Counted from the first letter of the stretch, positions 340-64,000 are shown. The stretch is DNA of 64,000 nucleotides from Macrostomum lignano (GCA_002269645.1 NIVC01003059.1:1-64000), one strand, 5' to 3'. Numbers and translations are program-made. The notes: generated by a model from the letters alone, not told the origin.

Positions 340-563
340 ATGGCTACCGAAAGATTGTCAATCTGACTGACGAAGAAGTCAGTTCACTCATCGAAGGAAC
401 GGTTCCAACAAACACGCTAAAAAAATGTCGCTGGATGTTTGCTACTTTCCAAGAGTGGCATGCGGCGAAGAAATTACTCTGGTGTTCCGACGGTGGACCC
501 GCGCTCATGGTACTGAAAGACGCAGATGAGTTCTCGAAGTCCGATTTGAACTTTCTAATGCAA
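340..563 (+). pseudogene. Truncated, frameshifted N-terminus of a Crypton/DUF3504-type tyrosine-recombinase-like protein
   Basis: ATG at 340. Restoring one base near 356 gives MATER(F)VNLTDEEVSSLIEGTVPTNTLKKCRWMFATFQEW...DEFSKSDLNFLMQ. This resembles the RF..L..EE....P.NT.K...W....F..W...LN..L pattern of Crypton/KCTD1/ZMYM-type proteins (recognised by eye). It is cut by the array junction at 560/561. Confidence 0.5.
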
Positions 564-642
564 CAAAATAATTTGCCCTAGGGCTCGAGGCTCAAACGGA
601 GAGCTGTGCACTCAGTGAGAGCCGGTTCCAGCTCGTCTCTTT

Positions 643-755
643 GCCGTATCGACGGTCTCTTACTGCGAAGACTCTTAATTTTGCATGGTAAGACACCGCG
701 TGGATCCAATTGAGCGATCTACTCAATTTTGACAAGCCGCGCTACCGCGGCTGCC
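643..755 (+). ncRNA. SL RNA gene (variant, Sm site with 4 T)
   Basis: GCCGTATCGACGG...TTGCATG|GTAAGA, then AATTTTGA and the 3' hairpin. Confidence 0.85.
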
Positions 756-1056
756 TAACAAAGCTAAAGACAACATCAATTAATTATAGTTGGTTGATTG
801 TAATTCTGGATTTAGCGTGTCCTACTAATTATTTTAAACTAAATATTCTATTTACCCGCAAGTTGTAAATTAGTTGTTGCACCATTATAGCATAGCATGA
901 TATAGCGCGCATATGCATCGCGGTGTACAGAGGCTATACTAGGCTATACTAGATCTCTTCGAGTTGCAATAATCAAATGTAATTTCTTAGATCGCTCTAT
1001 GCGTGCGGATGTGCATATGTACATGTACAACTTTGTTGATGGCGCCAACAATGAAT

Positions 1057-1339
1057 TATACTCAGCAACATTGAAAAGTCGCCATCACAGAAGATTCCGT
1101 CTGTGGTCGCCACTTTTGAGAGAGTGCAGGTAAAGTCTCTCTCAATATTTGCGAGCGACGCAACTCAGCTACGCCACGGCAGACTTGAGTTGAGGAATGG
1201 AGTGGGGGAGCGGTGTGCGAGGTTTGGACGGATCAAAGCTACCCCGATCAGTTTTTCTGGCATCTTTTATTTCAGAATAGTCCAAGACAAATTGATCACT
1301 GGCGCATAGAGTGGCGACTTTTCAATGTTGCTGAGTATA
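1057..1339. mobile_element. MITE-like element present in every array unit (first copy shown)
   Basis: Perfect 28-bp inverted repeat TATACTCAGCAACATTGAAAAGTCGCCA (1057-1084) / TGGCGACTTTTCAATGTTGCTGAGTATA (1312-1339). TA at both outer ends, as for Tc1/mariner-type MITEs. Confidence 0.65.
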
Positions 1340-1568
1340 CAGAGTCAAGCTGGACTGTACGCGTTACTGTTTGCGTTGAGCTAGTTAGGTTGACTTTGAC
1401 TTGACTGCAAATCACCACTATAGTTCACTATATACTACGAGTACGAGCGCGGTAAATCCGTCCGCATTACTAATTATATATTACAATAATTAGAGTATAG
1501 ACGAGAGGCGGCCCACACAATTGATCCGTACCGTATGGTCCGTATATACATGTAGCTGCAGGTTCAGG

Positions 1569-1576
1569 TTAATTAT
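1569..1576 (+). promoter_or_regulatory. TATA-like element upstream of 5S (present in each unit)
   Basis: TTAATTAT at about -31 to -24 from the 5S start, the position typical of 5S upstream elements. Confidence 0.35.
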
Positions 1577-1599
1577 GAGCTCAGCTCCTATCAGCCAGT

Positions 1600-1718
1600 G
1601 GCAACGGCCATACCACGTTGAAAACACCGGTTCTCGTCTGATCACCGAAGTTAAGCAACGTTGGGTTTGGTTAGTACTTGGATGGGTGACCGCCTGGGAA
1701 TACCAAATGCTGTTGTCT
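1600..1718 (+). rRNA. 5S rRNA
   Basis: GGCAACGGCCATACCACGTTGAAAACACCGGTTCTCGTCTGATCACCGAAGTTAAGC...AGTACTTGGATGGGTGACCGCCTGGGAATACC...CTGTTGTC. The 5' and 3' ends pair, boxes A and C are present, and a T6 run follows. Confidence 0.99.
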
Positions 1719-1723
1719 TTTTT
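1718..1723 (+). terminator. Pol III terminator T6 (present after each intact 5S copy)
   Basis: TTTTTT immediately after the 5S 3' end. Confidence 0.85.
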
Positions 1724-60554: not shown

Positions 60555-60668
60555 GCCGTATCGACGGTCTCTTACTGCGAAGACTCTTAATTTTGCATGG
60601 TAAGACACCGCGTGGATCCAATTGAGCGATCTACTCAATTTTTGACAAGCCGCGCTACCGCGGCTGCC
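60555..60668 (+). ncRNA. SL RNA gene
   Basis: Array copy. Confidence 0.9.
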
Positions 60669-61506
60669 TAACAAAGCTAAAGACAACATCAATTAATTAT
60701 AGTTGGTTGATTGTAATTCTGGATTTAGCGTGTCCTACTAATTATTTTAAACTAAATATTCTATTTACCCGCAAGTTGTAAATTAGTTGTTGCACCATTA
60801 TAGCATAGCATGATATAGCGCGCATATGCATCGCGGTGTACAGAGGCTATACTAGGCTATACTAGATCTCTTCGAGTTGCAATAATCAAATGTAATTTCT
60901 TAGATCGCTCTATGCGTGCGGATGTGCATATGTACATGTACAACTTTGTTGATGGCGCCAACAATGAATTATACTCAGCAACATTGAAAAGTCGCCATCA
61001 CAGAAGATTCCGTCTGTGGTCGCCACTTTTGAGAGAGTGCAGGTAAAGTCTCTCTCAATATTTGCGAGCGACGCAACTCAGCTACGCCACGGCAGACTTG
61101 AGTTGAGGAATGGAGTGGGGGAGCGGTGTGCGAGGTTTGGACGGATCAAAGCTACCCCGATCAGTTTTTCTGGCATCTTTTATTTCAGAATAGTCCAAGA
61201 CAAATTGATCACTGGCGCATAGAGTGGCGACTTTTCAATGTTGCTGAGTATACAGAGTCAAGCTGGACTGTACGCGTTACTGTTTGCGTTGAGCTAGTTA
61301 GGTTGACTTTGACTTGACTGCAAATCACCACTATAGTTCACTATATACTACGAGCGCGGTAAATCCGTCCGCATTACTAATTATATATTACAATAATTAG
61401 AGTATAGACGAGAGGCGGCCCACACAATTGATCCGTACCGTATGGTCCGTATATACATGTAGCTGCAGGTTCAGGTTAATTATGAGCTCAGCTCCTATCA
61501 GCCAGT

Positions 61507-61625
61507 GGCAACGGCCATACCACGTTGAAAACACCGGTTCTCGTCTGATCACCGAAGTTAAGCAACGTTGGGTTTGGTTAGTACTTGGATGGGTGACCGC
61601 CTGGGAATACCAAATGCTGTTGTCT
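61507..61625 (+). rRNA. 5S rRNA
   Basis: Array copy. Confidence 0.98.
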
Positions 61626-62201
61626 TTTTTGCCTCTTTAACTGCATGCCGCGCGCTCATCAACTAACTCCAGCTGCTGCATGCATTAATACTTAGGCCCA
61701 GGCCCACTAATCCGCCCGCGCCCGCCAACTGGATTGGATGCTGCTTGAATTTTTACCATACGGGCATACGGCATAGGTGTCTGCTGATTCCTTCCTTTCG
61801 AGTTCCACTCCACTCTATCAAGTCAAGGGATTCGATTCGCGTTTCATATTTTGTATGCGCACTTTGCATTTGCACGCGGTAACGCTAATGCACTTATGCA
61901 CTGTGTATTAATAGTTTTACGAGTATCTCCATTTCTCACATGGGAATTTTACTTGATTTATAGCCATCAATCAATCAACTAGGAGGCGCGTTTGTGTGCA
62001 CACTTTCTAAACATGTCGGCTAAAAGAAAGAAAGAAACTTTTTCGCGCAGCTCTTTTCAAGCTCTAGTGCAAAATAATGCTGCACTAGTCGGCAAAACTT
62101 ACTTGGAGTAGATAAAGTTCAACAAAATAATTTGCCCTAGGGCTCGAGGCTCAAACGGAGAGCTGTGCACTCAGTGAGAGCCGGTTCCAGCTCGTCTCTT
62201 T

Positions 62202-62315
62202 GCCGTATCGACGGTCTCTTACTGCGAAGACTCTTAATTTTGCATGGTAAGACACCGCGTGGATCCAATTGAGCGATCTACTCAATTTTTGACAAGCCGC
62301 GCTACCGCGGCTGCC
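62202..62315 (+). ncRNA. SL RNA gene
   Basis: Array copy. Confidence 0.9.
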
Positions 62316-63153
62316 TAACAAAGCTAAAGACAACATCAATTAATTATAGTTGGTTGATTGTAATTCTGGATTTAGCGTGTCCTACTAATTATTTTAAACT
62401 AAATATTCTATTTACCCGCAAGTTGTAAATTAGTTGTTGCACCATTATAGCATAGCATGATATAGCGCGCATATGCATCGCGGTGTACAGAGGCTATACT
62501 AGGCTATACTAGATCTCTTCGAGTTGCAATAATCAAATGTAATTTCTTAGATCGCTCTATGCGTGCGGATGTGCATATGTACATGTACAACTTTGTTGAT
62601 GGCGCCAACAATGAATTATACTCAGCAACATTGAAAAGTCGCCATCACAGAAGATTCCGTCTGTGGTCGCCACTTTTGAGAGAGTGCAGGTAAAGTCTCT
62701 CTCAATATTTGCGAGCGACGCAACTCAGCTACGCCACGGCAGACTTGAGTTGAGGAATGGAGTGGGGGAGCGGTGTGCGAGGTTTGGACGGATCAAAGCT
62801 ACCCCGATCAGTTTTTCTGGCATCTTTTATTTCAGAATAGTCCAAGACAAATTGATCACTGGCGCATAGAGTGGCGACTTTTCAATGTTGCTGAGTATAC
62901 AGAGTCAAGCTGGACTGTACGCGTTACTGTTTGCGTTGAGCTAGTTAGGTTGACTTTGACTTGACTGCAAATCACCACTATAGTTCACTATATACTACGA
63001 GCGCGGTAAATCCGTCCGCATTACTAATTATATATTACAATAATTAGAGTATAGACGAGAGGCGGCCCACACAATTGATCCGTACCGTATGGTCCGTATA
63101 TACATGTAGCTGCAGGTTCAGGTTAATTATGAGCTCAGCTCCTATCAGCCAGT

Positions 63154-63272
63154 GGCAACGGCCATACCACGTTGAAAACACCGGTTCTCGTCTGATCACC
63201 GAAGTTAAGCAACGTTGGGTTTGGTTAGTACTTGGATGGGTGACCGCCTGGGAATACCAAATGCTGTTGTCT
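63154..63272 (+). rRNA. 5S rRNA
   Basis: Array copy. Confidence 0.98.
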
Positions 63273-63848
63273 TTTTTGCCTCTTTAACTGCATGCCGCGC
63301 GCTCATCAACTAACTCCAGCTGCTGCATGCATTAATACTTAGGCCCAGGCCCACTAATCCGCCCGCGCCCGCCAACTGGATTGGATGCTGCTTGAATTTT
63401 TACCATACGGGCATACGGCATAGGTGTCTGCTGATTCCTTCCTTTCGAGTTCCACTCCACTCTATCAAGTCAAGGGATTCGATTCGCGTTTCATATTTTG
63501 TATGCGCACTTTGCATTTGCACGCGGTAACGCTAATGCACTTATGCACTGTGTATTAATAGTTTTACGAGTATCTCCATTTCTCACATGGGAATTTTACT
63601 TGATTTATAGCCATCAATCAATCAACTAGGAGGCGCGTTTGTGTGCACACTTTCTAAACATGTCGGCTAAAAGAAAGAAAGAAACTTTTTCGCGCAGCTC
63701 TTTTCAAGCTCTAGTGCAAAATAATGCTGCACTAGTCGGCAAAACTTACTTGGAGTAGATAAAGTTCAACAAAATAATTTGCCCTAGGGCTCGAGGCTCA
63801 AACGGAGAGCTGTGCACTCAGTGAGAGCCGGTTCCAGCTCGTCTCTTT

Positions 63849-63962
63849 GCCGTATCGACGGTCTCTTACTGCGAAGACTCTTAATTTTGCATGGTAAGAC
63901 ACCGCGTGGATCCAATTGAGCGATCTACTCAATTTTTGACAAGCCGCGCTACCGCGGCTGCC
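63849..63962 (+). ncRNA. SL RNA gene
   Basis: Array copy. Confidence 0.9.
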
Positions 63963-64000
63963 TAACAAAGCTAAAGACAACATCAATTAATTATAGTTGG

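Follow-up and report, generated by a model that had tools for sequence, protein, structure and literature searches.

The physical coupling of 5S ribosomal RNA (rRNA) genes and spliced-leader (SL) RNA genes arose repeatedly, in nematodes, euglenozoans, dinoflagellates, Oikopleura and copepods. To our knowledge, the SL loci reported from flatworms to date consist of SL-only repeats. In the present study, a stretch of DNA of 64,000 nucleotides (NIVC01003059.1:1-64000, hereafter the window) was analysed, in which a 5S rRNA gene and an SL RNA gene homologue of Macrostomum type are repeated together in one tandem array. The repeat unit has 1647 bp and carries both genes on the same strand, while the 5S-SL1 unit of Caenorhabditis elegans has about 1 kb and a divergent gene pair.

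5S-SL linkage has been described as a common arrangement (PMC7346339, PMC3795323, PMC4664967). The best known case is the 5S rDNA-SL1 tandem cluster of C. elegans, with about 110 copies and equivalents in C. briggsae and other nematodes (PMC1657053, PMC7986045). The window resembles the clusters of C. elegans and C. briggsae in its short unit with one 5S gene, which RNA polymerase III (Pol III) reads, and one SL gene, read by Pol II (both predicted in the window), in its monomorphic, high-copy tandem array and in its concerted evolution. It differs from C. elegans in the phylum and in the SL RNA sequences, which are unrelated, and SL1 is a proven major leader whereas the leader of the window is a candidate. 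Oikopleura dioica and copepods are likewise independent animal cases of physical 5S-SL coupling (PMC8008620, PMC4664967), but in Oikopleura most units form inverted repeats that are scattered along the chromosomes instead of a long head-to-tail array, and the leaders are unrelated. Among flatworms, the SL RNA gene of Schistosoma mansoni belongs to a tandem repeat of 595 bp, in which no 5S gene is described (PMC2770079). This cluster and those of other trematodes and cestodes share with the window a flatworm SL RNA, same-strand tandem arrangement and concerted evolution (PMC2770079, PMC12582326); the SL RNA of S. mansoni is shorter, with two stems. A 2025 survey of SL clusters of parasitic flatworms gave 0 hits for the string '5S r' (PMC12582326), and in the papers on M. 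lignano the SL gene is treated apart from the 5S unit (PMC8629364, PMC5704211). No report of 5S-SL linkage in flatworms was found in the literature searched, subscription-only papers (e.g. Davis 1997) excepted, in line with the first-pass annotation of this DNA, to which none was known. Its claim of novelty is retained as apparently the first 5S + SL RNA co-repeat noted in Platyhelminthes, and becomes more modest than it was put, linkage being common elsewhere.

The array, its left flank and the 5S rRNA genes are as follows:

1-560, no strand assigned: left flank, non-repeat; the array edge lies at ~555-561, and the first SL copy starts 82 bp downstream of it
561-64000, + strand: 5S + SL RNA array, running past the right end of the window
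22005-22123, + strand: representative 5S rRNA gene (RF00001, 116.5 bits), followed by a T6 Pol III terminator
1600, 7060, 8712, 10361, 12007, 13654, 15301, 22005, 23652, 25299, 26945, 28592 and 30238 (truncated), + strand: starts of 5S genes 1-13
38449, 40096, 41743, 43390, 45037, 46684, 48331, 49978, 51625, 53272, 54919, 56566, 58213, 59860, 61507 and 63154, + strand: starts of 5S genes 14-29
30238-30358, + strand: 5S pseudogene (95.5 bits), its last ~10 nt and T-run terminator gone via a small rearrangement

A BLAST comparison of one unit against the window showed that the unit is reiterated head-to-tail from 561 to 64000 and is cut by three transposon insertions. With these insertions excised, unit length ranged from 1642 to 1660 bp (mode 1647 bp). 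Tandem Repeats Finder reported nothing, its maximum period of 500 being exceeded by the unit. The array contains 29 5S genes and 30 SL genes at a constant offset of 695 nt and a period of 1647 bp; each SL gene starts 695 nt past the 5S start, i.e. 576 nt past the 5S end, on the same strand. The first-pass annotation, which had placed a 5S gene and, ~700 bp downstream, a same-strand SL-like gene in every unit, agrees with these counts. Its span for the repeat, 561-64000, was confirmed as well, except that ~15.4 kb of it are the transposon insertions at 3189-6989, 15467-20519 and 30532-37100.

The identity of the 5S genes, also proposed in that annotation, was corroborated with Rfam: all 29 copies, on the + strand, were above the gathering threshold of RF00001 (gathering score 38). 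Scores were 116.5 bits for 26 copies, which span model positions 1-120, and 115.5, 109.1 and 95.5 bits for one copy each. The lowest score belongs to the truncated copy listed above and the next to the insertion-adjacent copy at 15301-15418, which has a 1-nt deletion. On reading of the consensus unit, the T-run terminator GTCTTTTTTG stands directly 3' of the 5S gene and TTAATTAT at about -31 to -24 relative to it.

The 15 complete units between 38449 and 63153 are 100% identical, a value that assembly polishing may exaggerate. The first four units have 9-27 differences each, and variants cluster there and beside the insertions; in these edge and insertion-adjacent units the 5S and SL genes are degenerate to a similar degree. 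The array thus shows the usual signature of concerted evolution. It was considered whether the adjacency of the two genes could be an artefact of the assembly, from chimeric or collapsed repeats. Consensus polishing could indeed produce perfectly identical interior units, but thirty consecutive units with consistent spacing, a clean array edge and three different transposons inside units, with intact target-site duplications, are contrary to this explanation, as is the 1645-bp 5S unit obtained by independent PCR in M. lignano (PMC5704211). An artefact is therefore very improbable. The window covers an edge of a chromosomal tandem array with at least 30 of its units, and each unit has two independent small-RNA genes. 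Unequal crossing-over and gene conversion would homogenise both genes through their shared unit, and their copy numbers would change together.

The SL RNA gene and its parts are given for the representative copy, together with the positions of all copies (L002 is a genomic contig described below):

22700-22813, + strand: representative SL RNA gene, ~111-114 nt, assigned from its copies, its fold and its homology to the SL gene of L002
22700-22744, + strand: leader exon, 45 nt, 3' end ATG, 38/45 identity to the M. cliftonense SL
22745-22750, + strand: 5' splice donor GTAAGA, predicted to pair with the leader UCUUAC in stem I
22783-22791, + strand: Sm-site-like AAUUUUUGA, predicted to be single-stranded, between stem II and stem III
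22793-22810, + strand: 3' terminal hairpin AGCCGCG-CUAC-CGCGGCU (predicted fold)
643, 2298, 7756, 9407, 11054, 12702, 14349, 21053, 22700, 24347, 25993, 27640 and 29286, + strand: starts of SL genes 1-13
37497, 39144, 40791, 42438, 44085, 45732, 47379, 49026, 50673, 52320, 53967, 55614, 57261, 58908, 60555, 62202 and 63849, + strand: starts of SL genes 14-30

The 45-nt leader GCCGTATCGACGGTCTCTTACTGCGAAGACTCTTAATTTTGCATG is present in 30 exact copies on the + strand and in 0 on the - strand of the window. The sequence of the gene is invariant across 114 nt in 26 of its 30 copies, and the four variants all lie within the first five units: two have U4 for U5 at the Sm site and two (7756 and 11054) carry 2-nt deletions in the terminal hairpin. 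The intron half of the gene includes GGATCCAATTGAGCGATCTACTCAATTTTTGACAAGCCGCG. The predicted fold has -37.6 kcal/mol (z = -3.0 against dinucleotide shuffles).

Published Macrostomum leaders were used for comparison: a 35-nt leader of M. lignano, CGGTCTCTTACTGCGAAGACTCAATTTATTGCATG (PMC8629364), a 44-nt k-mer consensus of the same species, CCGTAAAGACGG...TTGCATG (PMC5173321), and the 45-nt, transcriptome-derived leader of M. cliftonense, GCCGTAAAGACGGTCTCTTACTGCGAAGACTCAATTTATTGCATG (PMC10468722 supplement). The SL RNA gene of M. lignano has 109 nt; its leader sits in the first hairpin, its donor is GTAAG, and an Sm-like motif separates the two hairpins that follow (Ustyantsev and Berezikov 2021, PMC8629364). 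These features of its architecture all recur in the predicted RNA of the window. The leader of the window, equal in length (45 nt) to that of M. cliftonense, matches it at 38/45 positions without gaps and the 35-nt leader of M. lignano at 30/35, the first 22 nt of the latter being identical; the GTAAG donor that follows it is the one described for M. lignano. Additional sequences were obtained by scanning public metagenome contigs with the shared 22-mer, which gave two matches, L001 and L002, and by scanning prokaryotic genome contigs, which gave L006 (JAGQZA010000190.1).

L001 is a contig of a JGI metatranscriptome. It represents a trans-spliced mRNA of flatworm origin, whose positions 1-38 are the canonical leader ending in ATG, upstream of a message for a glycine-rich CCHC zinc-knuckle (CNBP-like) protein. 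On L002 a Na/K-ATPase beta gene, whose protein has best database matches of 76-77% identity, lies 1.05 kb downstream of a canonical SL RNA gene; there is no 5S gene on the contig. In L006 a U1 snRNA gene (Rfam 151.7 bits) precedes the canonical SL gene by 305 bp, and no 5S gene occurs across 3.7 kb:

L006, 1121-1283: U1 snRNA gene
L006, 1589-1697: canonical SL RNA gene

The layout of L006 suggests a U1-SL linkage in a relative. This contig is of flatworm origin and was mis-binned into a Flavobacteriaceae metagenome-assembled genome (MAG), i.e. it is a contamination in a public MAG; TTAGGG-type repeats occur at ~270-340.

The SL gene of the window and that of L002 are 90% identical along 77 nt, a stretch which begins 6 nt upstream of the start and ends within the intron. 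Folded separately, the genes of the window, L002 and L006 take one common three-stem topology, in which the 15/15 base pairs of stem I (leader UCUUAC with donor GUAAGA) are invariant. Stems II and III occupy equal positions but differ in sequence between the window and its relatives, e.g. the terminal hairpin is GCCGCG/CGCGGC in the window and AGCCC/GGGCU, at the equivalent position, in L002 and L006. The gene of the window is homologous to those of M. lignano, L002 and L006. Common to all are the donor GTAAG and stem I, a layout of three hairpins with an Sm-like site between the second and the third, and an AUG at the end of the leader. It differs from the canonical genes in seven leader positions, located in loops, in the sequence of stems II and III, in the Sm site (AAUUUUUGA against the canonical AUUUUUAG) and in its neighbours, the SL gene of L002 being next to a protein-coding gene and that of L006 next to U1. 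The Sm-like site of the window is nearer to the consensus than that of the canonical genes and resembles the U1 Sm site of L006, AAUUUUUGG. The homology to mRNA-derived Macrostomum leaders and to the gene of L002, the shared stem I and donor, and the Sm site uphold the SL RNA call of the first-pass annotation, and from these sequence comparisons the assignment as an SL RNA gene homologue is regarded as secure. As the SL genes of L002 and L006 are not accompanied by 5S genes, linkage to 5S is not general among macrostomid SL genes, and it is either lineage-specific or specific to the variant class.

M. lignano, M. cliftonense, M. hystrix, L001, L002 and L006 all have one and the same canonical 45-nt leader, of which no copy is present in the window. 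The leader of the window differs from it at 7/45 positions (distinguishing strings GAAGACTCTTAATTTTGCATG in the window and GAAGACTCAATTTATTGCATG in the canonical leader), with the first 6 nt and the next 24 nt identical. Two differences, AA to UC, lie in the 5' single-stranded region or mini-hairpin loop and five, AAUUUA to UUAAUU, in the apical loop of stem-loop I. All seven are unpaired in the predicted fold, although they represent only two or three mutational events, so that the statistics are weak. The AUG at the end of the leader, the splice donor and the Sm site have all been kept. The leader is non-canonical, and its use in trans-splicing may be a candidate function.

The origin of the window was approached through the 5S unit. 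Zadesenets et al., with outward-facing primers inside the 5S gene, obtained a 1645-bp product for the 5S rDNA unit of M. lignano (PMC5704211). Both primers match the 5S gene of the window exactly, and the predicted amplicon has 1643 bp in 20 units, 1642 in three, 1645 in one and 1648 in one. Since the length of the 5S spacer changes fast, an amplicon within 2 bp of the published one speaks for M. lignano, or else a very close relative, as the source, and the earlier guess of a macrostomid flatworm is strengthened by these matches together with the homology of the SL gene. Protein searches gave no confirmation of the species, and exact look-ups of ORFs of the window had no match. The origin bears on a second explanation, that the genes with the diverged leader make up the only or principal SL family of a macrostomid species, without a second SL class. 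Such a locus would be expected to be high-copy, homogeneous and intact, as the array is; 5S linkage of the main SL genes is found in many taxa (PMC7346339, PMC3795323), and a canonical SL copy is absent from the window. On the other hand, a congener with seven changes would be an outlier with respect to a leader that is identical in three named species and three environmental sequences, and the exact primers and amplicon length lead to a species known for the canonical leader. We consider this explanation unlikely.

Regarding transcription, the 5S gene would be read by Pol III from its internal promoter, with a stop at the T6 run. The SL gene would be a Pol II unit of snRNA type, because the U5 run of its own Sm site would terminate Pol III, so that the Pol III unit and the Pol II unit of each repeat would be separate. 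In the region upstream of the SL genes, no more than the 6-7 nt before the start (CTCTTT) are common to the window, L002 and L006. A similarity between the window and L002 in this region, TACT..AGTAG..AACAAAA, was spotted by eye and dropped, as it did not exceed shuffled controls. Downstream, one motif was found:

22812-22820, + strand: CCTAACAAA, 9-mer, candidate snRNA-type 3'-end signal, once per unit, 2 nt past the terminal hairpin

The same 9-mer occurs once in L006 (1285-1293), 2 nt past the 3' end of the U1 snRNA, and looser versions of it stand downstream of the SL genes in both L002 and L006. This weakly suggests a snRNA-type 3'-end signal shared among macrostomids.

Four mobile elements were recognized in the array:

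3189-6989, no strand assigned: AT-rich non-autonomous element with terminal inverted repeats (TIR), 3.8 kb, GGGTCGTTC... termini, 3-bp duplication ACC, 71 bp upstream of a 5S gene
15467-20519, + strand: BEL/Pao long terminal repeat (LTR) retrotransposon, ~50 bp downstream of a 5S gene, TG..CA ends, target duplication CCAGC
30532-37100, no strand assigned: TIR transposon, 6.6 kb, in the spacer, 8-bp target duplication CACTCCAC
23115-23397, no strand assigned: miniature inverted-repeat transposable element (MITE)-like element, 283 bp, perfect 28-nt TIRs TATACTCAGCAACATTGAAAAGTCGCCA; across the array the first TIR arm starts from 1057 to 62617

The BEL/Pao element has LTRs of ~286 bp, ~100% identical, and an intact ORF of 1228 codons with the Pfam domains Peptidase_A17, RVT_1, DUF1759 and DUF5641; the nearest database proteins to its polyprotein are 47-51% identical. 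Its insertion into the 5S spacer seems to be recent. No ORF of at least 100 aa was found in the element at 3189-6989, and the minus-strand ORFs of that at 30532-37100 had no Pfam match. The possibility that the three large insertions are elements targeting 5S or SL genes, comparable to the SL- or rDNA-specific retroelements of other taxa, was rejected: all lie in the spacer with ordinary target duplications. In the left flank, an open frame at 351-581 (…KIVNLTDEEVSSLIEGTVPTNTLKKCRWMFATFQEWHAAKK…), without a Pfam match, enters the first unit and stops there.

The MITE is present in 29 copies, in every unit reaching that region of the spacer, and its TA-flanked termini TACTCAGCAA recur in L002 at 1135-1425, at a similar distance downstream of the SL gene. 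Its fixation across the units indicates that passengers are homogenised too, and homogeneity alone is therefore no proof of use of the SL gene. This agrees with a third explanation, by which the gene would be a silent or barely used SL paralog, copied as DNA into the 5S spacer and homogenised there as a passenger, the working SL being supplied by the dispersed canonical genes. The seven differences from a leader otherwise constant in the three named species and in L001, L002 and L006 are in accordance with it, as are the exact primers and the amplicon length, which suggest as the source M. lignano or one of its close relatives, with mRNAs reported to carry the canonical SL only, and upstream regions without significant likeness to those of canonical SL genes. 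A silent gene, however, would not readily account for 26 of 30 copies without decay, for an Sm site nearer to the consensus than the canonical one, for the intact stem I and donor pairing with leader differences that avoid paired positions, for the 3'-flank motif in common with the U1 gene, or for edge units in which SL and 5S degrade similarly. We hold a silent paralog to be possible, if on the doubtful side.

The explanation we prefer, and consider rather probable, is that of a working 5S + SL array, chromosomal and of Macrostomum type, whose variant leader is donated to pre-mRNAs. By this explanation the leader UCUUAC would pair with the GUAAGA donor, Sm proteins would bind AAUUUUUGA, and the 45-nt leader ending in AUG would be transferred to the pre-mRNAs. 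Several results weigh against it. Published surveys of three Macrostomum species gave the canonical leader only (PMC8629364, PMC5173321, PMC10468722), although the search for SL genes in M. lignano demanded a 100% match to the canonical leader (PMC8629364) and would thus have missed the locus of the window. The exact leader of the window was not found on the transcripts recovered, and the sole trans-spliced mRNA among them, L001, has the canonical one. Local alignment of the 132 nt upstream of the three SL genes was no better than shuffles (p = 0.26-0.9), and the interior identity may be overstated by polishing, as mentioned above. Finally, in one unit the SL gene was unmatched by any Rfam model, even at E <= 10; Rfam has no matching SL family, and this result says nothing against the SL call. 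In further searches, the scan of metagenome contigs returned canonical-leader sequences only and the scan of viral contigs gave no match. The Na/K-ATPase beta orthologue is not trans-spliced and so yields no evidence of the variant leader, and the Logan contigs resulting from a search with the CNBP-like gene, swamped by low complexity, had no SL-like leader upstream of the gene.

If the array is working, Macrostomum could have two SL classes, a canonical class of a few dispersed genes, some of them beside U1, and an overlooked leader in the 5S array, with dozens of copies or more. This is put forward tentatively, as a doubtful extension of the preferred explanation; it would be an independently evolved split between array and dispersed genes, similar to that of nematodes, possibly with different targets or tissues.

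The macrostomid example would represent a further, probably independent, origin of 5S-SL coupling, in an early-branching rhabditophoran that serves as a regeneration model, and the locus would offer Pol II and Pol III units sharing one array. Annotations of Macrostomum have sought the exact canonical leader only; thus, if the variant is expressed, trans-spliced genes and operons would be under-counted and the genus would have a second leader. If it is silent, the locus would be a clean example of hitch-hiking in rDNA by a small-RNA paralog.

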